64,000 nt of DNA from Takakia lepidozioides (taxonomy: Eukaryota; Plantae; Bryophyta), in the NCBI GenBank assembly GCA_030704615.1, contig CM060732.1, positions 11,470,001 to 11,534,000 of the forward strand, given 5' to 3'. The translations under genes were made by a program, and so were the position numbers. The stretch's first letter is position 1. The number at the start of each line of letters is the position of its first letter. The notes under the pieces are model-generated. The model was not told the origin of the DNA, did no database searches, and saw nothing but the letters and a program-made list of their open reading frames with translations. Shown here piece by piece: positions 1,196 to 64,000 of this stretch.

Positions 1196-1219
1196 CACCT
1201 CTAAAATATACTCACCATC

Positions 1220-31800: not shown

Positions 31801-33500
31801 GAGATGATGAAGTCTGTGATGCGGGACTTGAGGATGGGGGTGAAATCGCAGTTCCACTTGCAAAATGGACTGCTCCGGTACAAGCAAAAGCGTCTCTATG
31901 TGCCGAAGGCAGGGATCAAAGATAGTCTCTTGAGAGAATGCCATGATGGCCCGCTTGCGGGCCATGGTGGAGCCAAGTGCACCGCGGCACTCTTGAAGAA
32001 AGAGTATTTCTGGCCCAAACTGAGGGAAGAAGCCGAGGAGTATGTCAAGACATGCACCATATGCCAACAAAACCAGAGCGAGTACAAAAAACAAGCGGGG
32101 CTGTTACAACCCTTGCCGATTCCAGAGGGATCTTGGGAAAGTGTCTCAATGGATTTCATGACTGCTATGCCGTTGTCAAAAGGATTCAGTAAAATGAGCC
32201 ATTTCATTCCACCAAGGAGACGGCAACGGCACAGGAGACGAGACGACTTTACTTAGCCCACATCTTCAAGCATCATGGACTCCCGAAGGATATTCTCTCG
32301 GACCGCGATCCAAAGTTCACAAGTAAATTTTGGAGGGCACTCTGGAAAAAAATGGGGATGAGGCTCAAGATGAGCACCACTTTCTGACGTACGACGGACG
32401 GCCAAACGAAAAGGGTGAATTTCGTGGTGAAGCAGATCTTGCGGAATTACGTGTCGGCAGACCAATCGGACTAGGTGGAGCACTTGGACGCGGTAGAGTT
32501 CTGTTATAATAACATAAAACACTCCGCAACGGGAGTTTCCTCTTTCGTATTGGTCTATGGAAAAGCACCTCTGGTGCCGACAAGTTGGGCCGCCCAAGAC
32601 ATTGAAGAACCGGCAGCAGCAGCGGTGTTGGAAGAACGCGAGCGTTTGTTGAAGCTCGCAAAGTACAACATTGCCAAAACTAGGAAATGGTATGAATGGC
32701 AGGCAAATCGGAAGCAGAGGGAAGTTAAGTTTGAGGCAGGCACGGAGGTCTGGTTGAACATCAAGAATTTCCGACTACCTCCGGAAGTGAGTCCGAAGTT
32801 CGTACCTCCGTATGCGGGACCCTTTCGCATCCGAAAGGTTATGAATGAGGATATGTATGAATTGGAGGTGCCGGCAAACAACAAGGTGTATCCGGTATTC
32901 CACGTCTCCCTTTTGAAGCCTTACTTCAAAGATGAAGCGCGTCCGAATCGGCATCAAGTGTTGCGTCCGCCACCTGTGCTGTTGGATCATGAAAATGAAC
33001 TTGAGTATGAGGTGGAGGTAGTGCTTAAGTCGATGAAGTTCAAGAATCGAGAAACGGAGTATCTCGTGAAATTGAAGGGCTATCATCATGTGGAGGCATC
33101 TTGGGTGCGTCCCTCAGAAATGGGAAACGCATCCGAGGCGGTTGCAGCTTTCGAAGGACGATCTCAAAAGCGGAAGAAGCGTTGATGGAGACATCAACCT
33201 TGGATCGTGGGGGAGGAAATGCATGCTTAGCCCGGCTTAGCTAGCTCAGGAATCCGTTTGCAAAAACTTGTATTGTACAAATTTTGTTGTAAATGAAATG
33301 GTTTCCAAATATTGTGTTTCATATCTTATTGGAATGGTGATGCATAGTATAGTTGGCTAGTGTGTAGAATGCATGCTAGCTTACAAAGTGAGAGAGGTAA
33401 ATTGGATTAGTCGTGTGTTTGTGTAGTGCCGAAATCGGGTGACTCCCATCCAAGGGGCAAGGAAACTTGCACCTTCGTTGGGAGTTCACGTGCTCGTGCG
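25900..33500 (+). mobile_element. Ty3/gypsy chromovirus LTR retrotransposon (element 2), with pol present twice in tandem
   Basis: PBS TGGTATTAGAGC at 26302. Gag 26552-27730 with CX2CX4HX4C (CFNCGEPGHMAKKC) and protease (LVDIGASHSF). RT YIDD at 28445-29359, then RNase H and integrase. Pol restarts at ~30297. Chromodomain EYEVEVVL...EYLVKLKGY...SW at ~33000-33185. PPT at ~33208. Confidence 0.95.
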
Positions 33501-34039
33501 CACCTGGTGCGTGTGCGTACTATAACTGCGCTACCGAGGGGGTTGTCTTGTAGTGCGGGCTAACGCGGAAGCTACGTGCTTCTGTTCACGTACTATAATC
33601 GTGTAGCCTCGGGATGAAGTCGTAGTGCGGCTTCGGCGTGTTCCCGTACCTCAGGCCAGCATTCCAAGGCGGACCCAATTGTAGTGATTGGGGCGCACAG
33701 TTGGTTCAAGGTTATCTTTCTAGTCAAAAAACGGTTCAAGACGAACCCTTGCTCAAGGTGATGCCAAAAACGACATCACGAGCGGTTACAAGCAAATGTT
33801 GTTGCAGTAAGGCGATTTGATCCTCGGGGAGGATCGTTCCTTGGCCCTAAAGTGGGCCAAGAAGAGTGCACTGCAAGGGCCTGCACCGTTTGTTTGCACC
33901 ACCTCGCGAAAGTTTAGGATCCGTCTAGCTTTAGTGAGCAAATTGTCAGTGAGATTGAACTTGAGAGACATGTAGATGTTGTTGCACCATCTGAGGGTAT
34001 CAATGTTGCAAAGGTGTTTTACAAGTCCAACTAAATAGT

Positions 34040-35870
34040 TTTCATGCCCAATCACGTTTCTGGAAACCTTATGCGCGCTCTTCCCTTTGCTGGACATTCT
34101 TCACAGTCAATGATGGCGGAGTTATTGACGTTGACAAACCGCAAGTGATGAGGTGTATAATCTGTCATGGTGCATATGTGAGTTCAGATCTTTTAGCTCT
34201 TCGCACTCGTAGCAGAAAAGGCTTGATTACTTACTTTAAGTCAAATGGTATTAGTGCCATGAGAAAACATGTTGAGACTGAGCACTCACACTTAGGTAGT
34301 AGATACGATGAAGATGTGAGCAGCAGGGCAAATGATCTTTTCAAACGGCAACCTGCAAAGAAACGCCCAAAAGTCACACTTGGTACAATCTCCAAGTTCT
34401 TTTCTTCAATAGACCTTTTCAAAAATGATGCACCCACACACAAGTCTTTCCTTCAGAATCTTCTTCTGTTTGTGATTAAACAATACTTGCCGTTGTAGAC
34501 AGTATAATCAGTGTGGCTGCAAAAGTTGGCATTGGGCTTGTGTCCAAGCGTTGTGTTTCCAAGATGATCAGTGTTGTTGACAAAACTAGAGAGAAGTATG
34601 TCATTCCAGTATTGCCGTCGTGTATCACAACAACAGTCACCTTCGACTTATGGATGTCCAAAGGTGTACATGATATTTTCACTGTTGTCGTTAATTTTCT
34701 ATCCTCCGAATGGGAACCTAGACATGTGACAATTGGTTTATTTGAAGTAAATCACACTGCTGGACAGGCCATGGCGATGCAGCTGCAAAATGTGCACATT
34801 AAGAAATTGCTTCGCACATGCCATGTCTAAGGTTTATCAGTATGCAAGCACCGATGAGAAAGTCTGTCGACGGTTCTCTTATGTGTCCATCAAAGCTGCT
34901 CAAAGTGACATACAAAAATGTATCACCTGGCCTAAGAAATCTGGAAAAGACCTACAAGCATGGGATGTTGCTTGTATTACTAAGGGACTCCGTCTAAGAA
35001 AGCTCAACACTCCTGCAAAAAATCGGGTAATCAGTTGATTCATAGAATTTCAAAAATTTCTAGATTGCATCATTTTTGTGTTGATGGGGCTAAATAATTC
35101 AAATGTGGCTTTGTGTTGCCTTATGTATGTAAATGTGATTGTGCATCTGAGTTGTATTAATTTCTAATCGGTGTCAACATTCTTGTGGGATGCTTAGATT
35201 TGTAAGCCGTATTTTATTTAACCTCCGCGACAGCTGCAAGCTCGGGTAGGGGCGACGGTGGCTCAGGCACAGGAGCGTCCTTCCTCTTTGGTGCCATACG
35301 AATCCGTGAGACCGACAGAGATCACAGGAAATGAATGCAAACCCTCACGATGAATCAATGCAGATGACCCATCTTCCCCAAGCACAGGAAGGAATGATGT
35401 ACCTCGGCGAATTTTGCAAACTCTCCAAAACCAGCTGCAAAATGAAACCCCAACACACCATGCTCCCTTGCAACCATCCCCTACCACACAAAACACAGAG
35501 CCCAAATGCATAAAAGCATTTCACAAAACGACATGCAAGAAAAAATGACAACTTGCATTACAATAAAAATTCGGCAGGGCACAAGAATCTAAACGCCAAA
35601 CACTCAGCCCTAACATCTGCGTAAATGCAATCACACCCCGAGCTCTAATGTCTAGAACACACAGCAGGAAACGGAACAGCTCTTCGGTTTCGAGCAGCCA
35701 TCAATCACTGCTACAGCCATGCAGACAATTATAATCACAAATTGTGTCCTCAACCAAAGTAAAGGACACTGGTTATTATCATATGCTTTGAATTCAGCCA
35801 TAGCCTTGGTTGTTAAATATCAGAGCGACATTGATGCAAGAATTGTAGATGACAACTTGGGTATGTGGAA
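34040..35870 (+). mobile_element. hAT-family transposase pseudogene (copy 2) with a 460-bp insertion at 35220-35679
   Basis: FWKPYARSSLCWTFF..MRCIICH BED finger and FDLWMSKG. Colinear with copy 1, including the left end of the nested TIR element (35868-36125). Confidence 0.8.
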
Positions 35871-36125
35871 GGAAGCTACGCCACGAGCCTGCTCACGTGA
35901 GCCTATGAGCCCAGGCACTTAGTCGGAGCTTGGGCGTCACGCTTAGTGGTCGTGAGCGCAGAGTGGTGCGGTATTAGAAAGAGGGTATATACCCAAGGAT
36001 AAAGGCAAACCTATTCCCGCGAGAATACCAGCAGCGTCATTTGAAAAATTGGAATCATATTGAGGCATACATTATGTGTGATGACTTATGTGGGCGTTAA
36101 CGACCACATAATTCGTAACCTCACA

Positions 36126-37416
36126 AAGCTACGTGAGGAGCTGGAGGAGTTGCTTTTAGCGATCTCATCTCGCCATCCACGTCGTGTCACCATTGAGGTG
36201 AAATATGTTAAGCTAAATTTCGCCCACGATTGTCATGCATCGTGGTACAGATTTCCTTCGCAGAAAGATGAGAGCCGCGATCACGACATTTGATTGGCAG
36301 TTCTCCGTGCAATTACTTCCTCCGTCGTGGATATGGTATCCTTGGAGCTGCAACGGGCCGACACGAAGGCACATTACGAAGCGGAGTTGCAGGAGTTCTG
36401 CAGAGGCTTGTACTCCAACCAGACTTTACGACACCTAGTCATCGGGTACTATGTTGTCGACGCAGACGGACAATTGAGTATGGTACATCACGTCGCAGAG
36501 ATACTTCGCGTGAACAACTTTCTAAAACGTCTTGAGATTGATGGGATAGCCATCAACACAGATTCAGCCAAGCTCTTGGCTATCGCTTTGCGTGAAAATC
36601 GTGCCCTGCAAAATTTGCATTTGTCTCAGTCCTCCTTTCTGCCTGTGTCTACATCCCATGGGTCGGCAGAGGGAGTGCAAATGTTGGTGGCTCTTTTGGT
36701 TGCCATAGATCCCTTAGGCTCCAACTTTGTGTTGCAGACGTTACGGATGGGGTGTTGTCTCGGATACGATAGCGTCATTAATGACGAGGCAGCCAAGCAC
36801 GTGGCAGCGATGTTGTGTGGCAATTCTTCCTTGTTGGAGCTTGAGCTATCGTATTGGACGATGAAGTCGGAGGGCGGTGCTGCTATCGGCAGGGCTTTGG
36901 CCACCAACACCACCCTTACAACTCTAAGCGTGCAAGGCTGCACGATTGGGGCGGATGGTGTGGAGGCGATAGCACAACATCTCGCACACCACAATTCTTC
37001 TCTCACAGGCCTTAGTGTTGGCAACACTTGGAGGACAGAGATAGAGGGAAGCAAGGCAGTCAACGCATTGGCCAACATGTTTTGATCCAACTCCACGTTG
37101 ACCTATGTGGACCTGTCACATAGTCGGTTTAACGAAGAAGGTATTGTGGAACTCTTCAAATCACTAGCCACCAACACGTCTTTGACAGACCTTGATCTTA
37201 CGGGTTGCGAGGTTGTCGCCGGGGACAGGGTGTTGGCAGCAATCGGGGATTCACAGCGAGCCAATCTGTGTCTACAAAGACTCTGTACAGGGAATTCTTC
37301 CTTGTGCCATGTAGATTGGAGGTGTGTAGAGAGAAGGGAGCAGCAATCGGTGTTACGAGGAATGATGAGCTCCGTGAGTCCGGAGGCAGCGAGCGTGTTG
37401 ACTTACGGCGCCGCTG
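36126..37416 (+). pseudogene. RNI-like leucine-rich-repeat protein, TORNADO1/Roco-like N-terminal region
   Basis: One continuous frame (36060-37577) with stops at 36291 and 37083. ~28-aa LRRs (AL.xN.TLxxLxL). Ends in VLRGM..V.P.AASVLTYGAAG, which resembles the entry into a Roc P-loop, followed by a probable GT donor. Confidence 0.7.
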
Positions 37417-37610
37417 GTACTCAACCGTACTTCCACTTTCTCATATTACATTCTTCCTGTTTTGCTTTGCACCTCTTGAGGACGCCGAATGTAACAAGTA
37501 ACTCCGCAATACCGTGTAAGAATTCTGAATTCAGAACTAATCATTGGATGGTGTGGATCGTAAGTCGATCAATGTAATAATTTGATCATGTGGCTGAAGT
37601 GGATTATGCA

Positions 37611-37697
37611 GTGGAACCCCTCGGCCAGTGGGGATTGCAGCCTGTCGGACTCCCCATCAAAGTTCACCTCATCCTCCCAGTGGCAGAGGGGTTCCAC
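37611..37697. repeat. 87-bp hairpin (23-bp imperfect inverted arms)
   Basis: GTGGAACCCCTCGGCCAGTGGGG ... TCCCAGTGGCAGAGGGGTTCCAC. Confidence 0.7.
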
Positions 37698-37898
37698 ATC
37701 ACCTAACCTGCCGTTAAGAGACGCTGTAGAACCGGCAAACATTCTCAGTGTATACAATTTATCCCAATCTTAACATGAGATAAATGAATGAATACCAAAG
37801 TTCAAACTGAGGCTGTATCAATTTACTATGATTCATTTACTTTTACTCTCCCCTTGAAGAGATGGGCTCAAACCTTCCAAAATAAAAGTAGAATGTAC

Positions 37899-40800
37899 CT
37901 GGCCTGAATCTTGAAGAGCTTGTGCTTGTTTGTGACATCAACAAGCTCAGCATCACATTGACCACGTCTGTATGCAATTACTTCAAGTGTGTAATCCTCC
38001 TTTGTCTCACAATATTTACCAATGACCTTAAGAGTCATAGTAGCGGTTTCTGGTCAGAAAGAGCTCTGGATCTTTGTTTGTATCAACGATGATCTTCCCC
38101 AATGCATTATGTGCATGCACTTCTTTGCTCCCTTCACTCACAAGATGCTCTAAGAACTGAGTCAGCAATCCCAACTGGTTCCTGTCCAACCCATCAAACT
38201 GTTAGTTTGATTCATCCTGAGACAACAGACAGCTTCCACATGGAATTAAAAAGTCAGTAATGTGCCCTCTTTCAATACATTTTCATTTTGCGCATAACCT
38301 GAGAATTGACTGTGACATAGACATCATGCTAGGAGCAAACAAACAGATTAAAAATGACATAAAGCCACCCTGGAACAATTTATTACCTCTTCTCCCACTC
38401 ATCAACCACTGCCTCCACTGGCAGTAAAGAGCAGACAGACAAGATAGGGTCCTCGATGAAATCCTTGGGGTGGCCATCATCCAGCAATTGCCGAACCACC
38501 AGAGGCGCATTTTCTGGGTTCACCTGCACAAGGAAGGATCATTAGAAACTTTATTTGCATGGACATAAAAGTGACTGTTTGACCTCCAGGGCAAGAATGA
38601 TGTATACATCCAGACACACTGCAAAAATTAATGTAGAGACAAAACTAGATTAAAAAGAACACAAATAAGAGGGGACAAAATTATCACTCCCGATAACAGG
38701 TCTCTGCTTTCAGTCAGTGTATTCAGGATATTTCCTGTTCCTCCAAGAGCAGGTGCACTCAGGCCTAATGGAAAGTATATTCCGGCCCTGAGTCAAGACG
38801 CACCAGTGTAGATCAACAAAATTAACAGATTGAAGTATGATGAGCAGAGAACAAAGTGCAAGAGTGCAAAAGCAGAAATAGGACCTGAAGGGCATGCATG
38901 TAAAGACCAGCTTTCCAACAGAGCTCAGCAATTTGAGGACGGTCATAATGGCTGAACATGCCCTTTGCCAAAATTGAATCAGCTATGCTGGGGGACGCGA
39001 CCAGACTGATCTTCAAGACCTGCATAACCAACAACATTCATTTACACATGTCAGCCGCATTATCCAGTGGATTGACATGACCTTGTCGATCATATCTACA
39101 GGTAAGTACTAAGTACGTGCAAGGTAGCTATGTAAAGTGACAAGGTCATAGAAGGATAATCAAGATGCACACCATAGCAAGGGGAAAGAACAGGAAACCA
39201 ACAGACAAGTTACAGGAGGGCACAGACCATGCAAGTCCATCTGCACTGCACATTGTAAGAGTCAGAGCTAACTCTACCTTAGTTTGAAGCATGGCATGCT
39301 CTGGAAGGTTAGGCTTCAAAACATCCAGAAGAAAAGCAATTGCCTCCCTGATCATGTTGCGCTGCAAAACACAAACTCCGGATCAATAGGTTCCGCTTTT
39401 AAGCCTCAAGTTCCGGTGAAGATTAGTGAATAGAATACACTTATGGTCATCATCCATTGATTCATACCTCAAGGAACAACTCAGTTATGGTGTTGTAGTC
39501 GTCTGGGCACCCTCCTTCAAGTTGAGAGATCATTAGAGCAAAGTTCACATCACCTTGCACTCCAGTGACCAGATAAAACTTGGAACATATGCACAATATG
39601 CTAAGAACACAATCTACAAAAAACCATGGGCACTAAAGCTGAGAAGAGACGTTGTAGGACACATTTCACAGGGTCAGATTGCAAGATTGATTGCAGCAGG
39701 ATAGCCTGTAGCATAAGGAAGATATTGCTCACCTAGAGCTCAGTGGAAGGTGTTGCGCATTAGTCATCACTATGCTGCAAAATCCAGATTACATCGGCGG
39801 AATACAGGGACACATTAATGATAACACAAGTGAGGGACAATTATGGCGAGGAGATAAAATGTCCACTACTGACATGAGGACGTACCGGTGGTTTTTGGCA
39901 AATCTTCAGCAGCATCAACAATTTGTCATATATGATATGTTCTCTGGAAGGAGGTCGCGTGATATCCAGATGATCCGACTCCTCCACTTTGTAGTTGTTA
40001 CAGCCAGATAATCTTATGGCAGACTCATACGGCACAATCCAACCCTACGAGATAGAAAATTCATCTTTTCAACCACTGGAGTAGTAACACTTTCTTGAAC
40101 CTCAAAGAGTTGTTATATAAAAGGCAGCCTTCAAGATATCTAAACCACTTAGACCATAGATGACACAATTCAGCTTCTGATTCATCTGCACGGCATTGTT
40201 GCACTGTGCATCGTTGCTTGTGCAGGGAGGTTTACCATAGGTCTGTGTTCTCCACATGTGATGGAAAGTAAGCAATTCAACCTCTCAGAGGGGAAAAATT
40301 CTCCAGTCTTAGTTAATGTTGAAGCAGCACGTACACCTAGCTAACCCTAAAATACTGCACTACTTGACACTATCATAAAATGCCTTGCATCATGTTCCTA
40401 TCCAATTAGTAAATTTTATTAGTACCAATACTCCGCAGCATTTCTTGGTTTGTCATTATGAGAAACTCCAGAGAACGTACCCAATTTTGTGTTGGTTTGC
40501 CCTCTCCGAAAGCAAAGATGTGGATTTGAAGTCTACAAATAACTCCCTCAAATTCTGTTGATAAACGCTCAATCAGGTCGTGTTGTATATTTCCTGAGGG
40601 CTCCAATTTACCAAAACTTCCCAAGTTCATTGCGGAATGGGGAACAGCATAGTGTGCAATGCCTCGGAGATTTGATAAGAACGCTTTTGCATTCTCAGCA
40701 GCCTCCTTGTCCAATTCGTTCGCACATGGCATGGTTTCAGTCCTTGCAGTATGTACCACTAAGCTCTTCACAGCCAAACCTCCGTAGCCATGGCCAACAA

Positions 40801-41385
40801 GCACAATTGGTGTTTGCCATCCGAAACTGGAACGAGATGAACTGCACATGAACAGGATCAAGCAATATCAGATTTTGATCTTGGACGCCAAAATGTGCAT
40901 AGACATTTCCAGATCCTGTTCTGAACAGCTAACCCTCACCATTTCCTTTCAACATCTAGGTGGATAAGATCGAGGACTAGGAGCTAGGCTCCGGATCTGC
41001 CTTCACATTCCAGCGAAAGTGAGAATCTCTTTTGACTGCCTAAACTTCTTGTTCAATGAACAGGCTAGCAAACCATAGTATTCAAGTGAGAAGCAATGTA
41101 CCTGACTAAGCTTTGCTGCAACCTCCTGCCAAAGTCGTCAACAGCTTGGATGTTGGAATATCTAACATCTGCACTATGAGATACGAGTAGAACACGCACT
41201 GTTCCTTCCAGGTCTTCTGGCAGCCACTTCACTGGCCAGGAGAGTTCATGATTGTCATGATGCACCCATGTGTGCTGTGAAACACTGCTTTCCTTTCCAA
41301 ACTAGAATCCATGGAAAAAGATGACATCCAGGGTGGTTTCCCGATCATCGTTAGGGGGTGGCCACACTTGTTGAACAAGGTAAAC
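37899..41385 (-). pseudogene. alpha/beta-hydrolase - clathrin heavy chain fusion gene (copy B, most complete hydrolase)
   Basis: Exons encode LDVIFFHGF...TW...WPVKWLPEDL...RVLLVSH; PIVLVGHGYGGLAVKSL...FGEGKPT; GWIVPYESA...DHLDITRP; then CHC peptides [75 protein letters not shown] and [16 protein letters not shown] junctions throughout, with scattered stops. Confidence 0.85.
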
Positions 41386-41942
41386 CTGGGCAAAGTTAAA
41401 GAGATCTTGAGTCAGAAGTGTTGTATAGTTTCCAGAACATTGATTCAAAGCTTCAAGAGTTCTCTTGAAGTGCCAAACGCTTCTCGAGTGAGCTTGCAAT
41501 GCTTCTTTGACAACTTGTGTCCACAATATTGTTTGAAGCAATGCATACATATGTTACCATATCCAGAGTCTAAAACCATGTTGCAAAAAACAAATGAGTT
41601 GTTCCAGAACAAAACTAGAGATGTGGTAAGCACAGTTGCAGAGATCTGATGAGCTTGCTTGTGAGTCTAGAGTGAAAAGAATTAACTTCTCATAAAAGCT
41701 ACTTATGTCGTATGATGTACTTTAGTACTTCTGGAACAGGAGTCACTTCGTGATCTTTCACAAGGTTTGCAGCTTTAGAATGAACGCGTTTTGCACTAGG
41801 CGCATTCATAAGCTGTGACAGGATCCTGAGTGTTCTCATGATTCAGTAAAAGGTGCTCATAACATATTTGAGAACTGAATACCTCTGACCCATCAGTTAG
41901 AGATGCCTGTGGACAAGGTAGGGGTACCTCATGACAAAAGAT

Positions 41943-44900
41943 TGTACTCATAAGACGTTGTTTGCCGTAGCCTTGTGGCCATTGACCCCGCGCCCAGTTT
42001 GAGCGGGAATAAAAGGGACAGAACCTACCTCTGTCAGGGGCTGATGTTGGTACAAAGTTGGTAAACAGGGGTACAGGCACAATTCCCTTGATAGATTTGA
42101 AGAGAGCGTCTCTTTGGTGAGAGAACCCCGGACAGTGTATCAGAAAATGAATATTGTCTTCAGTCTAGTGCCGAGAGTGGGTAGACCCTTGAGGTCATCC
42201 AAGATGTCCTCCCCCATGTCACTGACTGGAAACAAGTTCAGGGAAGTTTTCTGCCTAACTTCATTTTCATCAGACAATCTCATGGCAACAGACATGGCTT
42301 TGGACACTACAGCCTCTAAGTCAGATTTATCCAGCAGGGTCAAGACTTGCGGATCCAGGTCCAGGTCCTTGAGAATCTCTTCTACTCTCTTCTGCCAGGA
42401 CTTAGCCTGTTTGACAGGGCGGTCCTGTTTCCAAGATATAGAGTCGACTAACTTAGGATATCTGGTGTTGGGCATATGTTGCAGCTGACCCCACCATCTG
42501 ACCTTGAATTCATCTCGTCGGGAGCTTAAGGACGGAATGCCAAACTCACCTGGAACAGCCACATTGGCTGTTTTGGAGCATGCTGACATACACTCCTTAA
42601 CCACCCCCACTTGAATGGATTCTAGAGACTTAGCCTGGTTGGAGTTATCAACCCATATTGCAGATCCGTACTCCAAGGCAGGTCTAATAACACGACAAAG
42701 CATGGTTTTCTTAACCTCAGAGTTGACCCCTCTGCAGTGGAAAAATTTAGTGAGCCCCAGAGCTTTGCCCTTGCCAGTTTGAACAACTTTCCAGATATGT
42801 GCATCCCAATTACAATTGGAGGAAAACTCAACACCCAGGTAAGTGTAGGAAGGGAGGACCGGGATCTCTTGGCTACCCCACTGCCACTTAAGATCACTTC
42901 CTCCCTCTCCTCTGTCGTTGAATGCTACCACTGCACATTTGCTGACATTAGCCTCTAGCCCCCAAAGATCAAAGTATCTCTTCGCGCAATCAATCAACTC
43001 CTGGAGATTGGTTGGAGTCTCCCCTATGCCTGCGAAGTCATCCGCAAACATAAGGGCTGGTATGGTGGTATCACCCACCCTTAACCCAAATCCCTCACTT
43101 TCCACATCCTTGAGGAGTTGATTGATGAAAACATTGAAGAGCAGAGGGGAGAGAGTACATCCTTGAGCTACACCTTGGTCTATGTCAAAGAAGTTGGACT
43201 TCTGTCCGTTAACAGTGACACAGCTTTTGGTGTGAGCATACAAGTTGTGGACAACTCTCCACATCTTTCCCTTGATCCCACAAGACCAGAGGCGGAACCA
43301 TAGGCCATCTCTCCACACTGTGTCATAAGCCTTTTTGACATCCAGGAAAAAAACATAAGTGGGTTTCCTTTCTTTTTTCCTTCCCTGGATAATCTGGCTT
43401 AGAGTGAAGATATGATCCACACAGCCCCTGTTTTGCCGAAAGCCAGCTTGGCCTTCGTGGAAACAACCTCTAGACTCCAGATCAACCTTGAGACGAGTAC
43501 TTATAACTCTGCAGAATGTCTTGCCAACAGCATTGAGGAGCGTGATGCCACGGTAGTTCCCCGGTTCTTCTCTGTCACCCTTCTTGTATAGATTGACAAT
43601 GACCCCCTGTTGCCAGCGAAAGGGGATCATTTCAGTCTTCCAGATAAGGTTAAAGAGGAGAACTAGGGCCTCTATCATGGGATCGCCACCGTGCTTGATA
43701 AGCTCGTTGACAATACCATCAGGTCCACCAGCTTTATATCCATTTAAATGTTCAATTGCTTCCACAATCTCAGAAGAACTAATGGGAGCGTTATAAGCCA
43801 TTAAAATATACTCCAGTTCATCAGGGCTGTTTTGAATCATAGGAACAGTTTTTCCAACTGTGTCCCTCCATTCAGCAAAAGACCCCTCACTGTTAGACCT
43901 AGAAGTTCTGCCAAGGATACTGTAGTGAGTTTCAAAGGTTTTGACAATGTCAACCGATGAAGTCACCACTGCACCTTTAGTAGTCTTCAGCGCTGGTACT
44001 TGCTGACCGTTTTTCAGCTTGTACAAACATTGAAGGGCCAACCAGAATTTCTTGTCATTACCACCATGGTGGTTTGAGTTTATTTCACTGTATAACTTGT
44101 CCCAGTATAATTTCTTCTGAGACCTAACAAGCTGATTGATATCTTTACGGAGCTGGTAGTACCTCGCCCACAATTCTCTGTTGGTTTTCAAATTGCAGCA
44201 CTCTTTATAGAGGGCTCGTCTCTCAGCTATCTTGAATTTAATCTCATTGGTCCACCAATTAACAGCTCTACCGCAGACAATTTGTTTCCTCCCGATGATC
44301 TTGTCAGCCACGGAGGAAACGAAACTCTCCCAAGAGTCCACTGCTCTTTCGACTTCATTTCTTGCGTTGTCAGAGCGAGACTGAAGTTCTTGGAGCGATT
44401 GGACAAAATGAGGGAGAGCCTCTTGCAAGGCCTGGACGTACTCAGCCTTGACCTCCTCATTATGGAATTCTTCTATGCGCCACTTCCGAATCGAACGTTT
44501 CACAGATCTCTTGGTGTTGGGAAAACACCTTTTGATCTCAGTCCAAACCAGGAAGTGGTCAGAGGTACCAATATCAGTTCTGTCGATCAACACATTGGCA
44601 CACTGGGGGAACAAATTTTTGTCCATTATGATATAGTCCACAACGGAACGTTCCCCAGTTTGGGATTTCTCACGAGTCCACTGCACTTGGTCACCTCTTG
44701 TCCTGTTATTCAAGGTGAAAAGCTGAAGCTCTTCCAGGCAGTTAATTAACCGTCTGCCATTAGAATTCAGCTCGTCCTTACCAAAAGGCCCAATGATATC
44801 GTCCTGATGGAGCCCTTTGCCCACCCGTGCATTGAAGTCACCCAATAGCACCACCTGACCTTTGGCAAGGAATGAAGCACAGTCCAGCTTTACATCTTCG

Positions 44901-46300
44901 AAGGCTTTGTCTGCGTCAGCACTGAGGGTCCCTCTGTGGGCATGTAAACACAACCCACAAAGAGGTCCTTCGTACTCATGCCTTCAGATTCAGTTTTAGC
45001 CAGATACTATGCTCGTACCTCAAACCCTTGTTGATAATTTCACAATTGTCAAACAAGAAATCATGGACAAAGAATCCAACCCCTTTTTGACCGCGTTTGG
45101 CAGAGGCTGCCTTGAGAGTACACATCTTACCTGCCCATTTATAACCATTGACATCTCCAACCAGTTTATCCGACGTTTCCCATGTTTCTTGCCCAGCACA
45201 GATATGAATATCATTAGTCCGAAGAACTTGTCCCACTTCAAGTTGTTTCCTTTGGTTGGTCAACCCTGAGAAGTTGAAAGTGGCCAGCCGCAAGCCAGCC
45301 CTTTGCATGTGAATTGTTTGTCGTCTAGGTAGCTTGTGATTGCTCCTGGACGGCCAACCATTCTGCAAAGGGAGGACAGTTACCCCATGTGTAGATTTTG
45401 CTCGTCTTGTGTAAACTTTGAGAATTGGTAAACCATTCAGGGTACCAAATCCTTCAGTTACACGACTCACAAGCTCCGCACACATAGGGACAGATTGTCC
45501 GTCAGACTGCTTGGGGACAATTACCCCGTGTATAGATTTTGCTAGTCTTGAGGATTGGTAAACCATTTAGAGTACCAAATCCTTCAGTTACACAACCTTC
45601 AGGCTCTGCACACTTAGGGACAGATTGTCCATCTGACGGCTTGGGGACAATTACCCCGTGTATAGAATTTGTTCGTCTTGTGTAAACCTTGAGGATTGGT
45701 AAACCATTCAGAGTACCAAATCCTTCAGATTCAGGACGTTCAGGTTCCGTACACATAGGGGGATCTTGTCCTTCTGGCTGTTTGGATTCAACCTCATCCA
45801 GGGCATCAAACCGATTAGAAACTATCCTTGCCCTTGGTTGTCTTCCTAGAGCACCCCATTGAATCACCAATGTTTAAGACCGCTCTCCAGCCAATCAAGG
45901 GACGAACTTCTTTGAGATTGAATTGATGTGGGACTCTATTAGAAGCACTTTTGGTCATTGCAACCTTCAACGTACCCCTGTTATCAAGTCTCGAGATGGA
46001 ACTATTAGCCATGAAATCCAAGCCTAAGCTAGAGCATGTAGTTTTAAAGGACACATCGTCCATCCTGGGATTCACCCCAAAAACTACACATGAAGCCCTA
46101 GATTTGGCATAAGTAACCAATTCCCAGGAATCACCCTGAGGATGTTCATAGGAGCTAAAATTTTGATTGTAGTCGCAGGCTATAAGTTTAAGCACAGGAA
46201 CCAACCCGAGCCCAAGTGCTGAGTATGCTAGACAGAGCATACTACTGCCCAATTTGGGGGGAGGGCTGCCCCCAAGCGGTAAGGGTCCGCTTGTTACCAT
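41943..46300 (-). mobile_element. RTE-like non-LTR retrotransposon (LINE), near full length
   Basis: APE endonuclease (LATFNFSG...QETW at 44976-45310; GDFNA and SDH in ORF 42140-44953, frameshift at ~44960). RT (KAYD, GVAQGCTLSPLLF, FADD, YLG) and RTE-type RWWGQLQHM..TRYPK. Upstream ORF1-like region. Confidence 0.92.
45380..45730 (-). repeat. Three ~115-130-bp tandem repeats within the LINE 5' region
   Basis: Each encodes EGFGTLNGLPILK(VYTRR). Confidence 0.85.
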
Positions 46301-47189
46301 GACAAAAGGAAGGAACTTTGAGACGATGACCTCTTCCAGACACACTCACTTGCACCTATGACCTAGCCTAACATACACCGATCGTAGACAATACCATTTG
46401 GTACCCCCAAGGAGTGACGAGGAGACCTCATACCACATGGTTTTGGTTCCTATTGCTGCTTTTGACCTTTTCTCCACCATAGTCATTAACCCTTGCACGG
46501 ATACACACCACTTGTTACTCTCAACCGGAGCAGCTGTTCCTGGAATACGAGCCTTGAGACCGCACACCACCCATCACCACAATCGCATGTGAAATCATCA
46601 GATCTTGACTTTTCACCAACTCTTGATGATTCTCCGTGATCTCTCGCTCTACAGTACTCGTGGTTGATTATGGTTGACTGCTAAATGCAAAAAACAGAAG
46701 TGGGGGCTGATGATACAAGAACAAACCTAAGAATGCAATTGCGCAATGGCATGGAATCCTATGGAAACATTTGGTGAGCACATCCTGACGCAGCATGTGG
46801 AGGACCCGACAGCGTGTCAGATAGAGGTGGGTCTTCCATGCAGCTTGTGACTGGCTTGACTAAGTTGGTGGAGGGATTGAGTAAGCTTTCGCGAGACGGG
46901 ACCAGTACATCAGAACTAGATGCACCGCAACAATATATGGATACCGTATGTGTATTTTGTTCCAAGAAATGCGTCTTTTATTCTACTTTTATTTTGGAAG
47001 GTTTGAGCCCATCTCTTCAAGGGGAGAGTAAAAGTAAATGAATCATAGTAAATTGATACAGCCTCAGTTTGAATTTTGGTATTTTTTCATTTATCTCATG
47101 TTAAGATTGGGATAAATTGTATACATTGAGAATGTTTGCCAGTTCTACTGCGCCTCTTAACGGTAGGTTAGGTGATGTGGAACCCCGAC

Positions 47190-47829
47190 TATATGGCTAT
47201 GTACATATACCAAACATGATACCAATGTAAGAGTATCAACGTGTGAGAGTTTGATATATTAAACTTATATGGAACACATATCCCAACTTCAACATGATAC
47301 CTTACATAAGGGTATCCAAACAATATTATTTTTGATAATTCTCAAGATGATGCAACGGAAGCCTTTCATCAATTGTCAAGTTTGATTTTGTCTGTTTCTT
47401 TCGGAGCCAGCCATGTTTCTTTTTGCCAATGAATCACAGGAAGCTGCTGATCTCTCTCCGTCTCTGGCTCTCCCTTTCTCGCTGAGGCTGATGAGGGTGG
47501 CTTCACAACTCCACAATTTCCTCAAGGGCACAAGAAAGAGGGCCAGCAAGAATAGACGGGCAACATATATTTTTAGCTTATACTCTTAGATGTGTATAAG
47601 TATAATTTGAATATATATATATGCATATATATTATATATTATATACAGAAATAAATTAAAAATTACATATTACAATTCAATTGAATCGTGTGCCGACAAT
47701 TCAATTGAATTGCAAATTAGGGTTGTTTTCAAGCTAGTTTTAGTAGTTCAAGTGAATTGCGCACTTTTAGGGGGGTGATCAAGTGAATTGCGATGCATTT
47801 CACATCAAGGCCTTTTTGGAATTCCCTAC
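47190..47829. mobile_element. Internally deleted derivative of the element at 52254-61492
   Basis: 47195-47440 resembles 55237-55545, and 47540-47829 resembles 61247-61492. Both end at the same sequence CATTTCACATCAAGGCCTTTTTGGAATTCCCTAC. Confidence 0.8.
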
Positions 47830-48804
47830 ACGTTCACTTATTAACACTCCGCACCCATTCGGACGAGTGTTGGACTGGTATATAGGGTCTGGTCGGGTAT
47901 CAACCAAGGTATTGAATAACCGACACAGCTGGTATTGGCTGTTGTAATACTATGGTTAATAATCGTAGCATTCGTGAGCTGCTTGCTCGCCGCATAGCCA
48001 CCATCTGATTGGCCCTGAGGAGGACGGCTATGACATGGTAGCGTGGCTCCGTATGCATATGGAGCCCTACTACAGGCCTCCACCAACCTGGCCACCTCCA
48101 ATAGACCCCGCAGCGACCACCGGTTATTTCACAAAATGTTCTTCTTTCGCTCCAATCCATTTGTCTTTTGAGTACAACCTCAGCGTAATACATTTGCAAT
48201 GTCGACTACAGGCAATCGATATAGGACCAATCCGATTATGATTTACGACCTACCTACTATTACTTATACCAACCTTCTAGGTGGTATTAAAACGAGATAC
48301 CTTGCATGAATCCATCGCATATGTGTACAGCCACAAATAGACAAGCGAAACACAAAACTAGTGCAAATGAATGGTAAGAAACCCTAAAAGTTTATCAGGT
48401 AGTTGAAAAAGGGTAGGTCGGAAGCGGCTTGCAAGCTGCCCTGTACTGCTACGTTAGATAGTGCCTGCATGTCACCCTACCACCGTTAATAGTAGGGGCT
48501 CTGGATATACCTCGCTGCTGCCGTAGCTCGGTATATACGGAGCCCCTACTATTAACAATAGCAGGCTCCTCGCAGCCACTATCTAGTCCGAATCGGCTGG
48601 TATTGGCAATTCCAATACTATGGTTGATAACCGGACCGGCTGGTATTACAATACCCCTGCAATACCGCAATACCCATAACCGACCACCTCGATGTTGAAA
48701 GGAAATGGTGAGGGTTAACTGTTCACAACAGAATCTGGAAATGTCATGCACATTTTGGCGTCCAAGCTCAAAATCTGATATTACTTGATCCTGTTCATGT
48801 GCAG

Positions 48805-51800
48805 TTCATCTTGTTCCAGTTTTGGATGGCAAAAACCAATTGTGCTTGTTGGCCATGGCTACGGAGGTTTGGCTGTGAAGAGCTTAGTGGTACATACTGC
48901 AAGGACTGAAACCATGCCATGTGCGAACGAACTGGACAAGGAGGCTGCTGAGAATGCAAAAGCGTTCTTATCAAATCTCCGAGGCATTGCATACTATGCT
49001 GTTCCCCATTCCGCAATGAACTTGGGAAGTTTTGGTAAATTGGAGCCCTCAAGAAATATACAACACGACCTGATTGAGCGTTTATCAACAGAATTTGAGG
49101 GAGTTATTTGTAGACTTCAAATCCACGTCTTGGCTTTTGGAGAGGGCAAACCAACACAAAATTGGGTACGTTCTCTGGAGTTTTTCATAATTACAAACCA
49201 AGAAATGCTGCCGAGTATTGGTATTAATAAAATTTACTAATTGGATAGGAACATGATGCGAGGCATTTTATGCTAGGTGTCAAGTAGTGCAGTATTTTAG
49301 GGTTAGCTAGGTGTACGTGCTGCTTCAACTTTAACTAAGACTGGAGAATTTTTCCCCTCTGCGAGGTTGAATTGCTTACTTTCCATCACATGTGGAGAAC
49401 ACAGACCTATGGTAAACCTCCCCGCACAAGCAACGATGCACAGTGCAACGATGCTGTGCAGATGAATCAGAAGCTGAATTGTGTCATCTATGGTCCAAGT
49501 GGTTTAGATATCTTGAGGGCTTCCTTTTATATAACAACTATTTGAGATTCAAGAAAGTGTTACTACTCCAGTGGTTGAAAAGATGAATTTTCTATCTCGT
49601 AGGGTTGGATTGTGCCGTATGAGTCTGCCATAAGATTATCTGGCTGTAACAACTACAAAGTGGAGGAGTCGGATCATCTGGATATCACGCGACCTCCTTC
49701 CAGAGAACATATCATATATGACAAATTGTTGATGCTGCTGAAGATTTGCCAAACGCCACCGGTACGTCCTCATGTCAGTAGTGGATATTTTACCTCCTCG
49801 CCATATTTGTCCCTCACTTGTCTTATCATTAATGTGTCCCCGTATCCCACTGATGTAATCTGGATTTTGCAGCATAGTGATGACTAATGCGCAACACCTT
49901 CCACTGAGCTCTAGGTGAGCAATATCTTCCTTATGCTACAGGCTATCCTGCTGCAGTCAATCTTGCAATCCGACCCTGTGATATGTGTCCTACAACGTCT
50001 CTTCTCAGCTTTAGTGCCCATGGTTTCTTGTAGATTGCGTTCTTAGCATATTTGCCTAGTGTGCATATGTTCTAATTTTTATCTGGTCACTGGAATGTAG
50101 GGTGATGTGAACTTTCCTCTAATGATCTCTCAACTTGAAGGAGGGTGCCCACAACACCATAATTGAGTTGTTCCTCGAGGTATGAATCAATGGATGACTA
50201 CCATAAGTGTATCCTATTCACTAATCTTCACTTGAACTTGAGGCTTAAAAGTGGAACCTATTAATCATGAGTTTGTGTCTTGCAGCGCAACATGATCAGG
50301 GAGGCAATTGCTTTTCTTTTGGATGTTTTGAAGCCTAACCTTCCAGAGCATGCCATGCTTCAAACTAAGGTAGAAGCAGCTCTGACTCTTACAATGTGCA
50401 GTGCAGATGGACTTGCATGGTCTGTGCCCTCCTGTAACTTGTTTGTTGGTTTCCTGTTCTTTCCCCTTGCTATGGTGTGCATCTTGATTATCCTTCTATG
50501 ACCTTGTTACTAGTCCCCCCCCCCTTTACATAGCTACCTTGCACGTACTTAGTACTTACCTGTAGATATGATCGACAAGGTCATGTTAATCCACTGGATA
50601 ATGGGGGTGACATGTGTAAATGAATGTTGTTGGTCATGCAGGTCTTGAAGATCAGTCTGGTCGCGTCCCCCAGCATAGCGGACTCAATTTTGGCAACTGG
50701 CATGTTCAGCCATTATGACCGTCCTCAAATTGCTGAGCTCTGTCGGAAAGCTGGTCTTTACATGCATGCCCTTCAGGTCTATTTCTGCTTTTGCACTCTT
50801 GCAGTTCTCTGCTCATCATACTTCAATCTTTTAATTTTGTCGATCTACACTGGTGTGTCTTGACTTCAGGGCTGGAATATACTTTCCATTAGGCCTGAGT
50901 GAATATTTCGTCCCCTCTTATTTGTGTTCTTTTTAATCTAGTTTTGTCTCCAGATTAATTTTTGCAATATGTCTGGATGTATACTTTATCCTTGCCCTGG
51001 AGGTCAAACAGTCACTTTTATGTCCATGCAAATAAAGTTTCTAATGATCCTTTCTTGTGCAGTTGAACCCAGAAAATGCGCCTTTGGTGGTTGGGCAATT
51101 GCTGGATGATGGCCGCCCCGAGGATTTCATCAAGGACTTTATCTTGTCTGTCCACTCTCTACTGCCAGTGGAGGCACTGGTTGACGAGTGCGAGAAGAGG
51201 TAATAAATTGTCCCGATCTTTATGTCATTATTAATCTGTTTGTTTTCTCCCCGCATGATGTCTATGTCACAGTCAATTCTCAGGTTATGCACAAGATGAA
51301 AATGTAAGGAAAGAGGGCACATTACTGACTTTTTAATTCCATGTGGAAGCTGTCTGTTGTCTCAGGATGAATCAAACTAACGGTTTGATGGGTTGGACAG
51401 GAACCAGTTGGGATTGCTGACTCAGTTCTTAGAGCATCTTGTGAGTGAAGGGAGCGAAGAAGTGCATGCACATAATGCACTGGGGAAGATCATCGTTGAT
51501 ACAAACAAAGATCCAGAGCTCTTTCTGACCAGAAACCGCTACTATGACTCTAAGGTCATTGGTAAATATTGTGAGACAGAAGATTACACACTTGAAGTAA
51601 TTGCATATAGACTTGGTCAATGTGATGCGGAGCTTGTTGATGTCACAAACAAGCACAAGCTCTTCAAGGTTCAGGCCAGGTACATCCCAACTCTATTTTC
51701 CGTCATTTGTGATTCTGTCTTGTGTTTTGCATGATGTCGTAGAAATGATAAAGAAATTACTTGACTACATCTTGTTGGCGCTTCTTAGGTATGTGGTGGA

Positions 51801-52020
51801 GCGCATGGATCCTGACCCGTGGAAAAAGGTTATGCACCCAGAGTATCCAGAATACAGGAAGCAGCTTACTCTTGAGGTGTTGTCTATTGTTCTACCAGAG
51901 AGCAAGAACCAAGAGCAGGTGTTAGCCCTGTTAGCCACTTTGAAGGCACACTTGCCCCATGAGTTAGTTGAGCTTTTACAGTCAAGAATGTTTTTCAAAA
52001 CTCTGCCTTGAGTGGGTAAT
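48805..52020 (+). pseudogene. alpha/beta-hydrolase - clathrin heavy chain fusion gene (copy C; first hydrolase exon missing)
   Basis: Exons ~48805-49165, 49603-49761, 49873-49977, 50101-50179, 50286-50369, 50642-50777, ~51063-51199, 51401-51679 and 51790-52020. Inverted copy of B and direct copy of A. Confidence 0.85.
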
Positions 52021-52510
52021 CACCTCTAAAATGATCTCTTTGCACTCTGGTGGCATTCAACGACCATGGGGAGGGAGGTGGGGATCTCAAATGGAAACAG
52101 GGGCGGGCCAGTGCTCCCTTCCTACACTCTCCCTCCCTTCTTACGTCAAAAGGACCATGCTTCACAATGTGATAAGGCCTGCTTTGGAGTATGCATCAGT
52201 CGTGCGAGTTGACAACTCCAACCATGCCAAGTCCCTTGAATGCATCCAGGTTGTACCAAACGCTCCTCAACACACACACTGAAAGAAAGAGCTTGATCAC
52301 ATGGTTTGTCTTCAACCTGCCCACACTGTGTACTGTGGTTTGCTAATACATTTTAGGATAGAGTAGTTGTTGTTTCAAAGTACATTTGGTTCATCTACTT
52401 GATAGCCTATGTGAACTTTAGTGACGTAAGTCTTATGGGGAGTGTGTGAGTGGATACAGTGACTACAGAATTAACAGCAAACAATTACAACAAGGGCAAG
52501 GTCGAAAGCA

Positions 52511-56460: not shown

Positions 56461-57018
56461 GTTATAGGGCAGAGAACACACCCTGAAGTTGTCTACTGTT
56501 GCCTGCAAGCTCTTGAGATGTGGCTCTTTTTTTAGCAGATTGGCCAGCAACCTAATATTGCGGAGACAATAAACACCCAACAGTCACACTGACCATCAAC
56601 CTAAACTTAATTCCAAGCATTACAGACGAGCCATGACACAAACACTAACCCCTTCACTCCAATTGTTCTTCATGTGTTTTGCTCACAGACTAGTTTACCA
56701 GTTAGGGCCTTCTTGCTCACATCTTCAAAGAATACAAGCACTGCAAACACATGTTGCTGGCTAGCAAGGTTCAAGTCACACCCTTCCAATGGAAATGACA
56801 GCAGAAACAAAATGAAGCCAACCAACTCCCTAAACTCATTTCCTAACATTGTTAACCATGCTGAGCACCACATCTGAAATAAGCATGTCTCAGATTGATT
56901 TAGATATGTACCTTGTCACGAGTGGTGCATGTAGCTTCCCTGTACCCACAGTAAACCCTGACTATTGTTACAATTTGCACAAAAGCTTGTCAAGTAACTT
57001 TCACACCTACTCTTATCC

Positions 57019-61683: not shown

Positions 61684-62432
61684 CTATTTAGAGTTCCTCC
61701 GAGGCACTTTCACTTTCGAGTACGCATTGATGGTGATTTTTTCATAATCCGACATCTCATCACTAGTAACTTGTACGATAGGATCTGCATTCGAATATAA
61801 AAAATACTTCATGAAGGTGTCATGTTTGTTTCTGGTGATAGTATATTGCTCGCCAGAACCTACCGTTTTCACTATCACGCCAGAGAGGCCTCGTTTCACA
61901 GTAAAGGGATGGCCAGTCTTGTTGATAATGTCTATTGACTCCACACTCGCGAATACTCGACCGAGGCTGTAACTGAAGCCCATCCATATAAACATGTTAG
62001 CTCATAAAGAAAATCACTTAGATGTCTTCAAATATCGGCACAAGAACCAGTCAATCAGTAAAACAACCTCGAAGTGCGAGTGCCAGCAACAGTGGTGAAT
62101 AGACCAGCTTACCGACTTCTGCGGGAAGGCCGCGGGTCATATGATTTTGAGTAACCTTTTATGGTGACACTTTCATTCCCGGCTATGTCATCACCATCAA
62201 CTTCAAGAACAAGATGTAAATTGTAGTATAGACCATACTTGTAGTCCTTGTTGCAGCAGATGTCATAGGTATCACCATCTTTCAGTGTGGTCAAGCATGA
62301 AGTTGCTGCCTCCCCTTTTGCCTTGTCTAAACCATCTGAGGATTCTTCCAAAACTGGAGGAAGTACGCCGTCAGAGGATTCTATCAACGCCATAGGACGG
62401 CCAGTCTTGTTGATAATTTTGGTCCCTTCCAT
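61684..62432 (-). CDS. Two-domain small protein (tentatively DUF7748-like), copy C
   Basis: Near-identical to 4020-4767. Donor GTAAGC at ~62112 and intact acceptor candidates CAG/TTACAG at ~61968-61976. Confidence 0.55.
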
Positions 62433-64000
62433 ACCTCAATATCCCCTCTTTCTTCTCTTCACCACAGGAAAGATACTCCGGAGGTCGTAAATAGGAACTC
62501 GACACTCAGTATTCTGGACCAAACAAATGTAGTTATGGTGTGCATCTTGTGGAAATGTTATAGAAAAGCACCTTGGCAGACATTTTCTCAATATGTGAAG
62601 AGCAAGATTATCAATGTAATGAAGCACGTGGAGAGATAAATACAGTAGTTGAATACTTGTGCTCTCTTCTGCATGAGTTGGGAAAACATGTCATTACGCT
62701 CGCTTGGGTTTATCGAAAGAGAGAGAGAGATGACGCCAACCATATTATTCTAACATACCTATCCATGTATGTGTCCATCTCTGTACTGCTACACTTGTCC
62801 TAAATTCTTGCACATAGGTAACAGTGTGTCCGGGCGGTGGACATCTATCCAATCCTTGATATATATGGGTTAGTGATTTGAATGACACTTGTGGTTAGTG
62901 TTCTTCTAATGTTCTTTAGAAGACCATTTGAACATTCCATTGCACAGAAAGAACCAACGAGACATCTGTCCTCTACAAAAATTCCAATGATCCAAAGAGT
63001 TCAACCTGGACGTCCAATCCTATGCCGCCTGTGCGTGATGCACATTTTTGTCCCGTCCCTCCATTTTTCTGGGTCGCCCCCTACCGAGTCTCTTGCTACA
63101 CGCTTCAATTCCACCACTCGCTCTTCTTGCCACCTCCTCTCTTACTTGATGCATACTCAGGTACGTGCTACAAACACTACTAGTATCTACACACGGGCGT
63201 CCCTCCACCTTGCTTAGCCCTCTAGGCTCTGGGGCGATAGCCACGCTCTTTTTCTATGAAGCATCTAGAAAGTTCACCTGTTAGCCCCGACTATAGCCAC
63301 GTCATTCCAATGCAGGCATCGCGCATGTCTACCCGGCACTTTGAGGCAGTCCAACGCATGTCCATTGGCCATTGCACGATTCTTTTTCGTTGACGTTGCG
63401 GTACACCTATATTATTTTCCAAGCTTAAATGTTTTTAAAACAAGGGAAACTGGGAGTCGCTGCCCACAATTCAGGCCCGTGCAAGAGGGGGAAAAGTAAG
63501 CCCCTTTCATTTATGAGCCGCACAGCCCTACCGCACGCACGAGGCCCACACACGCATCCCGAATCTGACCCGCGCTGTGCACGTAGCAGCCCATGTGGCC
63601 TCCTTTCAACCCCTAGTAACGTGCTAATAACTAGCGTAGTCAAGGAAGCCACACACTTGTCATCATTTCGTATTTACTGTGTCGGCAGCACAGTGGGCAC
63701 AGCACTGGGCCCTAATGCAATCATGCCTCGACGTGACCTCATGACCTCGGCGCGCGTCGTTGACTGAGCATTAACTACTTAGCCTATGTCACAGTGCGCA
63801 CCAGTTCCTCAAGTGGGCACATGGGGCGACACGGGCCAAGTGAGTGAATTGTAAGTGCTGAGTCGGGACATTGTACTGAGCTCTGCCCACGATCATGTCT
63901 CCTACTACTAGCTAGGGTTCACCCCTACTCCTAGGTTCGGGCAGCTTCAGCTGGGCAACGGGCGGGTTAGCAAATGAAATGAAAGAAGCCAACCGGAGTT

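Follow-up and report, generated by a model that had tools for sequence, protein, structure and literature searches.

A transcribed family of hydrolase-clathrin heavy chain chimeras in Takakia lepidozioides, probably born by exon shuffling and with two recently disabled copies

A gene that joins the alpha/beta-hydrolase domain (Hyd) of bryophyte Hyd-NLR proteins to leg repeats of the clathrin heavy chain (CHC) is present in three copies, referred to as A, B and C, in a stretch of 64,000 nucleotides of the Takakia lepidozioides genome (GenBank assembly GCA_030704615.1, contig CM060732.1, positions 11,470,001 to 11,534,000), hereafter called the window. The family is transcribed and its introns are correctly spliced, with the hydrolase and the clathrin exons joined in one reading frame. 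On balance, the copies probably belong to an exon-shuffled and lineage-specific Hyd-CHC gene family with a long coding history, of which copies B and C are now disabled.

To our knowledge, nobody knows how the Hyd domain signals, and the atypical heads of NLRs in non-flowering plants, such as hydrolases and kinases, are barely understood. A Hyd head that has been cut from its NB-ARC switch and joined to a clathrin leg provides a handle on signalling without a nucleotide switch and on what the Hyd head responds to. It is also a clean and datable case of a bryophyte gene born through exon shuffling between introns of compatible phase, in which all stages between an open copy and a wreck can be seen. 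If the clathrin part were a bait, this would suggest clathrin as a pathogen target early in land-plant evolution.

Architecture of the chimeric gene

The three copies of the gene unit were located by self-comparison of the window and are 93-97% alike (Table 1). Copies B and C form an inverted pair, with 37879-40963 matching 48684-51699 at 93-95% identity, and copy A is 94% identical to the 3' part of C (50897-52032) and 96% identical to that of B. The first hydrolase exon, H1, is found in copy B only. The clathrin sequence breaks off at an identical position in copies A and C, in both of which it adjoins the same fragment of a LINE (long interspersed nuclear element), which makes this junction older than the duplication that gave rise to A and C; copy B is cut earlier, at 37893. 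The unit has a summed DNA contig depth of only about 1-3 times the depth of the flanking DNA, which points to a small family and not to a high-copy element. An assembly artefact was considered and ruled out, the variants being reproduced by independent DNA contigs.

The hydrolase part is encoded by exons H1, H2 and H3, which in copy B are colinear with the whole Hyd domain and end at the helix that lies before the NB-ARC linker of the relatives. Exon H2 retrieved 92 hits in a phmmer scan, the best of them at 48% identity, and the closest relatives of the hydrolase are from Sphagnum, Riccia and peat-bog metagenomes. The long hits include a protein of Sphagnum jensenii (P0005) and another of the same architecture (P0010), in both of which the hydrolase is followed by NB-ARC, a protein of Riccia sorocarpa (P0044) that has leucine-rich repeats (LRRs) in addition to these two domains, and further proteins with kinase or caspase partners. 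These Sphagnum and Riccia relatives bear out the assignment of the domain to the Hyd-NLR type in the initial annotation, which had been made from the DNA letters without database searches. A word-index protein search with the 120 residues of H2 yielded nothing at E<=0.001 among proteins of 66-210 residues, longer kin being outside its scope. Hyd-NLRs have been described in bryophytes (PMC3352924). The chimera has the same N-terminal hydrolase as these proteins (also termed HNL), being colinear with those of Sphagnum and Riccia at 35-49% identity per exon and sharing the motifs FFHG, WP..WLP.DL, AVPH and AFGEGKP. It differs from them in having neither NB-ARC nor LRR, in carrying CHC exons at the position of NB-ARC, and in having Gly where most of the relatives have Ser.

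This Gly occupies the position of the nucleophile in both B and C (GHGYGG); the relatives mostly have Ser there (GHS(F/I)GG), with one Asn and one Cys. The motif VGHSxGG that had been listed for the gene therefore has to be corrected to VGHGYGG in both copies. The DH of the segment ...EESDHLDI... is aligned with NH or DH of the relatives. Neither B nor C has the Ser nucleophile of an active serine alpha/beta-hydrolase, and the hydrolase domain of the predicted product is complete but probably non-catalytic. The FFHG motif, also listed initially, is indeed present in B, where a private TAG follows it, but not in C, which is without H1. No NB-ARC was found in the window, where tblastn with P0005 and P0010 matched the hydrolase parts of these proteins only.

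The remainder of the gene, exons C2 to C7, is derived from CHC. Exon C6 matches Pfam PF00637 (E=1e-18), and searches against PDB place C4 on residues 585-628, C6 on residues 852-947 and C7 on residues 946-1010 of bovine CHC. The PDB search with the 28-residue exon C2 gave no match, and its position was taken from the canonical plant CHC gene instead. Two plant CHC genes, one on a metagenome contig (L001/L002) and the other at a chromosome locus (L003), served as canonical references. The borders of C2-C6 are exactly canonical, and the GT-AG introns are placed where both references have them. The retention of canonical exon borders and introns indicates that the CHC fragment was copied as genomic DNA. 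In this respect, the early proposal of a multi-copy fusion without NB-ARC, made at the DNA level and comprising only CHC leg repeats with GT-AG introns, agrees with the PF00637 and bovine CHC matches, the canonical intron positions and the lack of NB-ARC in the window.

The identity of the CHC fragment was thus rightly recognised, but it is not one contiguous piece. It covers only residues ~528-628 and ~806-1018 of the bovine protein, and the ~180-230 residues between them have been deleted. The canonical exons between C4 and C5, which span about 1 kb there, are missing, and the gap between C4 and C5 consists of ~290-360 nt of intron-like DNA in C and B. Neither a propeller nor a trimerisation domain was found in the CHC part, which is made up of two leg-repeat blocks only; the gene does not have the complement of a full CHC, namely an N-terminal beta-propeller, seven CHCR repeats and a trimerisation domain.

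Transcription and splicing of the family

Contigs of two RNA-type runs from different studies, X5 (2017) and X6 (2021), were aligned to positions 37700-41700 at >=90% likeness, and the DNA run X1 was used for comparison. The share of the words of the stretch is 20-24% in X5 and X6 and 67-68% in DNA runs. The RNA contigs contain eight joints with CT..AC ends, corresponding to GT..AG on the gene strand, all of which are at predicted exon borders; these include 41102/40841, 40480/40043, 39886/39553, 39468/39361, 39276/39017, 38885/38523 and 38386/38180. None of the RNA joints is present in the DNA run X1, and their occurrence in RNA alone of the two shows that they arise by splicing and are not processed DNA copies.

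The in-phase splice between H2 and H3 that had been predicted from the sequence (a phase 0 joint, PTQNW/GWIVPY) is used exactly by the RNA contigs. Exon H3, likewise ending in phase 0, is joined straight to C2 (39886/39553), where one extra base in the contigs yields an in-frame exon of 87 nt; an in-frame C2 of the same length is predicted for copy C. In one contig of X6, H3 is joined in frame to C3 (39888/39362). The joint between C4 and C5 (38885/38523) bridges the internal CHC deletion, also in frame, and a loose end at 37896 runs on into the sequence of exon C7. The initial annotation had let the fusion stand or fall with a transcript in which the frame is open from hydrolase to CHC, and in-frame GT-AG contigs of this kind occur in both RNA data sets.

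The path by which the two parts are joined is different from the one first proposed. An in-frame linker exon had been placed between them, and its two stops, TAA and TAG, had been explained as C>T decay of an originally open frame. The borders of this supposed exon are not used by any RNA joint, H3 being spliced to C2 or C3, and the only contig across the region is unspliced and of low depth. Both stops are common to B and C and lie within the intron. The last ~10 codons of the linker (LLQSILQSDP) are a remnant of CHC exon C1 and constitute its sole tblastn match to canonical CHC.

The 5' part of the transcripts is variable. The exon that precedes H1 in the RNA (loose end at 41387) is not in the window; its last ten codons encode a peptide that resembles a conserved motif of BPA1-type RRMs, which is offered as a lead only. 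In flowering plants, BPA1 serves as an effector target (PMC11980575). Two loose 5' ends of RNA contigs (27-30 bases) have no match in the window with <=3 mismatches. Other RNA contigs splice different exons directly onto H2, and in X6 a close paralog of a candidate upstream exon at the B locus (46435..46570) is joined in this manner (loose end at 40842).

Coding history

Over 302 residues, the CHC-derived exons share 71% identity with canonical CHC, C7 having just 55%, and the canonical CHCs of land plants are nearly identical to one another. A protein search with exon C6 returned only pieces of canonical CHC, at <=74% identity, and nothing that closely matches the diverged form. The ancestral sequence reconstructed from A, B and C contains neither stops nor frameshifts, and all its indels are codon-sized. 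In a neutral simulation that started from the canonical coding sequence and proceeded to 25% protein divergence (~120 substitutions), 3.3-3.6 stops were expected and the probability of finding none was 0.02-0.03. In the introns, some nine indels accompany 83 substitutions (~0.1 per substitution), at which rate about ten frameshifts would be expected under neutrality. An ancestor free of stops and frameshifts despite a divergence of ~29% argues that the module was translated through most of its evolution, and some of the divergence may have accumulated before the capture, in a CHC paralog of full length. Copies B and C differ at 3.3% of exon sites and 4.9% of intron sites (Fisher p=0.03), and their Ka/Ks is 0.46. 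We infer that the family was coding for most of its existence and has undergone birth-and-death turnover as in NLR clusters.

State of the individual copies

Copy B carries a private TAG after FFHGF (41302-41304), where the RNA contigs and most of the DNA contigs have C at 41304, giving Gln. In addition, its C2 acceptor is displaced by 1 nt, a 1-bp insertion in C6 is absent from the RNA contigs and from most of the DNA contigs, and C7 has been lost; a LINE lies upstream. In copy C all splice sites are retained, H1 is missing and 8 bp have been deleted from C2. The visible part of copy A has an open frame, its exons C5-C7 being interrupted only by a TAG ten codons ahead of the stop of C. Each of B and C thus bears several disabling lesions, and the idea that either is live finds no support; both are recently disabled pseudogenes in a family that is transcribed and has long been coding. 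The coordinates of the copies, their exons and the other features of the window are compiled in Table 1.

Table 1. Positions of the three chimera copies, their exons and the neighbouring features, numbered from the first nucleotide of the window
Feature	Position	Strand	Remarks
Copy A	1-1207	+	Cut by window start; upstream part lies beyond the window
Copy B	37893-41385	-	Truncated at 37893
Copy C	48684-52032	+	Homology to B begins only at 48684
Copy A, exon C5	232-368	+	Open frame, intact splice sites
Copy A, exon C6	574-855	+	Open frame, intact splice sites
Copy A, exon C7	965-1153	+	Open frame, intact splice sites
Copy B, exon H1	41102..41385	-	VWPPP...FFHGF...WPVKWLPEDL; aligns with residues 35-127 of P0005, the Sphagnum Hyd-NB-ARC protein
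Copy B, exon H2	40481..40841	-	Nucleophile elbow GHGYGG, AVPHS, AFGEGKP; phmmer matches to Hyd-NLR-type proteins
Copy B, exon H3	39886..40044	-	Domain end ...KICQKPP, phase 0 donor; aligns with P0005 263-311
Copy B, exon C2	39468..39553	-	Acceptor AG shifted by 1 nt, giving 86 nt, out of frame
Copy B, exon C3	39278..39361	-	79% identical to canonical CHC
Copy B, exon C4	38885..39019	-	Bovine CHC 585-628
Copy B, exon C5	38387..38523	-	Bovine CHC ~806-851
Copy B, exon C6	37899..38181	-	Bovine CHC 852-945; private 1-bp insertion near 38030; C7 missing
Copy C, exon H2	48805..49165	+	Homology to B
Copy C, exon H3	49603..49761	+	Homology to B
Copy C, exon C2	50101..50179	+	Private 8-bp deletion, frameshift
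Copy C, exon C3	50286-50369	+	Splice sites intact
Copy C, exon C4	50642-50776	+	Splice sites intact
Copy C, exon C5	51063-51199	+	
Copy C, exon C6	51401-51679	+	In-frame 3-bp deletion, also present in RNA contigs (gap at 37995)
Copy C, exon C7	51789-52011	+	Ends at TGA; CHC homology to 52032, then LINE fragment
Supposed linker exon, copy B	39670-39774	-	HSDD*...*...LLQSILQSDP; intronic
Supposed linker exon, copy C	49873-49977	+	HSDD*...*...LLQSILQSDP; intronic
Possible upstream exon of B locus	46435..46570	-	GT donor, 17-nt exact match at 46435; no Pfam family; beyond the LINE
PPR-DYW gene (E, E+, DYW deaminase)	17945-19940	-	Intronless; split into two overlapping reading frames
Ty3 chromovirus	26470-34483	+	Gag, protease, reverse transcriptase (RT), RNase H, integrase, chromodomain
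Second, partial Ty3 chromovirus	6493-11851		89-95% identical to the first, 20.6 kb upstream of it
RI-type LRR frame	36060-37500	+	Intronless, ~480 codons; Pfam LRR_6; in-frame stops near 36291 and 37083
LINE (endonuclease and reverse transcriptase)	42140..46345	-	Pfam RVT_1, Exo_endo_phos_2; between B and C, upstream of H1 of B
Second LINE copy	56916-59858	-	96-97% identical to 42140-46345

Proposed origin and product

The chimera probably arose when a genomic piece of a CHC gene, complete with its own introns, landed in the phase 0 intron behind the last Hyd exon of a Hyd-NLR gene, at the site where the NB-ARC exon would normally come next. The hydrolase donor is now spliced to the native phase 0 acceptor of CHC exon C2. 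A second event, a deletion with intronic ends, probably removed what lay between exons C4 and C5 of CHC and likewise kept the frame. The product is predicted to consist of a variable N-terminal exon, the hydrolase domain with GHGYGG and an alpha-solenoid of ~315 residues from the ankle and distal leg of CHC, and to be devoid of propeller, light-chain region, trimerisation region and NB-ARC. The CHC solenoid is most likely a fast-evolving protein-binding module on a Hyd signalling head, which would act as bait for clathrin-binding factors or as a generic repeat sensor.

The prospects for the present role of the family differ. That at least one paralog retains some protein function, of a kind left undefined here, has close to an even chance, and that the whole family is now in decay is a considerable possibility as well, while a true decoy or sensor role appears distinctly unlikely.

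Alternative explanations

Several observations weigh against a coding Hyd-CHC family. Every copy in the window that can be judged is damaged. The RNA contigs themselves are frameshifted in places, with a gap of 22 nt in C4 (the contig of highest depth, in X6), of 2 nt in H3 (X5) and of 1 nt in C5 (X6), which implies that several paralogs are transcribed and that some of them are broken. These contigs are also short (240-470 nt), no complete frame from start to stop was seen among them and the 5' exon is undefined, and the classification of the runs X5 and X6 as RNA is a guess by software. Evidence of constraint between copies B and C is weak, with synonymous changes making up 38% as against 28% under the neutral expectation from the intron spectrum (p=0.08-0.14). 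Finally, searches of public protein sets with single exons revealed neither a protein of the Hyd-CHC architecture nor a close match to one of its parts, so that the family is known from Takakia lepidozioides only.

The lesions in all the judged copies, the frameshifted RNA contigs and the B/C constraint only weakly below neutrality, together with a hydrolase that has no nucleophile Ser, would also suit a family of transcribed pseudogenes, in which a remnant of a Hyd-NLR and a fragment of CHC came together by chance, were dead at or soon after the start and were then segmentally duplicated. Splicing would persist in such a family through the captured native sites, and the in-frame joints would be a matter of luck, 1 in 3 for each and ~1 in 9 for both. 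This explanation is unlikely but has to be taken seriously. It has difficulty in accounting for a CHC part that is ~29% diverged and has a stop-free ancestor (P ~0.02-0.03 for stops alone, and far lower with indels), for exons that have changed more slowly than introns, for splice sites that are all intact in C and A, and for lesions each of which is private to one copy.

The initial annotation went further and proposed an integrated-decoy immune gene, an 'executor + clathrin bait', the open linker exon of which had decayed through two C>T stops. Several lines of evidence agree with parts of this proposal. The Hyd domain belongs to the Hyd-NLR type, transcripts read through the fusion in frame, and the CHC part has evolved fast. 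Two Hyd domains of Marchantia cause cell death resembling the hypersensitive response (HR) in N. benthamiana (PMC11218826), and clathrin-mediated endocytosis serves the entry of effectors in flowering plants (PMC10291037, PMC10291035). Against it stand the linker exon, which is unused in RNA and the stops of which are shared and intronic, the lack of an NB-ARC or a paired NLR in the window, the absence of the Ser nucleophile, and the literature searched, in which neither a Hyd-CHC fusion nor CHC as an integrated domain was found to be reported. The proposal is accordingly regarded as improbable. A broader version, in which the family would consist of modular immune proteins without NB-ARC, having a Hyd head, a fast-evolving CHC bait or sensor and swappable N-terminal partners (an RI-type LRR or a BPA1-like RRM) and turning over by birth and death like R genes, is likewise improbable.

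Fragments captured and amplified by a transposon in the style of Pack-MULE, Helitron or CACTA elements, which would make the unit a cargo and not a gene family, might explain exon-intron fragments of two unrelated genes in the same orientation, the internal deletion and the transposon-rich surroundings, but are very improbable given that self-comparison of the window revealed no terminal repeats bounding the unit, that the end shared by A and C is a 5'-truncated LINE fragment and not the terminus of an element, that a depth of ~1-3 times the flanks denotes a small family, and that a frame kept over a long divergence is unexpected for cargo.

Relationship to known gene families

An exon-shuffled Hyd-CHC gene family is thus the reading that we retain, and its product stands apart from the families from which its parts are drawn. 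With neither the NB-ARC and LRR of an NLR nor the domain set of a CHC, the gene is derived from the two families. Homology to CHC (plant CHC1/2; bovine, PDB 1XI4) covers exons C2-C7, with introns at the canonical positions, whereas the propeller, linker, proximal leg, light-chain site and trimerisation domain are missing and the identity of 71% contrasts with the near invariance of plant CHCs.

NLRs with integrated domains or decoys are exemplified by RRS1-WRKY and RGA5-HMA. The chimera is similar to these in that part of a host protein belonging to a pathway exploited by pathogens is attached to a signalling domain derived from an NLR and in that the inserted part is fast-evolving. It differs in lacking a nucleotide-binding switch and in that neither a paired helper nor an effector is known for it, and as neither the gene nor the window contains an NB-ARC, the CHC part cannot be classed as a domain integrated into an NB-ARC receptor. 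The architecture is closer to that of truncated NLR-like genes of the TIR-X or CC-X types. Chimeras of R-gene clusters offer another parallel, with a phase-compatible (0-0) intronic junction, reuse of native splice sites, local inverted and direct duplicates, and birth and death accompanied by private lesions; the pairing of a Hyd head with a CHC leg differs from these in that it was not found in the literature or protein databases searched.

Repeats and neighbouring genes

Some repeats lie close to the gene copies. An inverted repeat of 207 nt (37688-37894 and 46980-47186, 96% identity) has one arm adjoining the truncated 3' end of B and the other 1.5 kb upstream of C, and hints at an older tandem or a rearranged layout of the cluster. 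Direct repeats at 4058-5073 and 61722-62741, downstream of copies A and C, are 97-99% identical; being more alike than the gene copies (94%), they may reflect either a young element inserted twice or gene conversion.

A frame encoding an RI-type LRR was examined as a candidate part of a gene in the window and rejected, since it lies on the opposite strand, convergent with B, and contains two stops. It is the only LRR found, and the chimera has no C-terminal LRR within the same gene. An Atlas look-up of this frame returned generic RI-type LRR clusters only.

The window as a whole is land-plant DNA that is very rich in transposons. The splitting of the PPR-DYW gene into two frames suggests a frameshift or a base error. 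The chromovirus at 26470-34483 contains an internal tandem duplication of ~1.97 kb that covers the RT-RNase H-integrase region, and 5'-truncated fragments of the LINE located between B and C adjoin the CHC ends of both A (1310-1521) and C (52048-52253).

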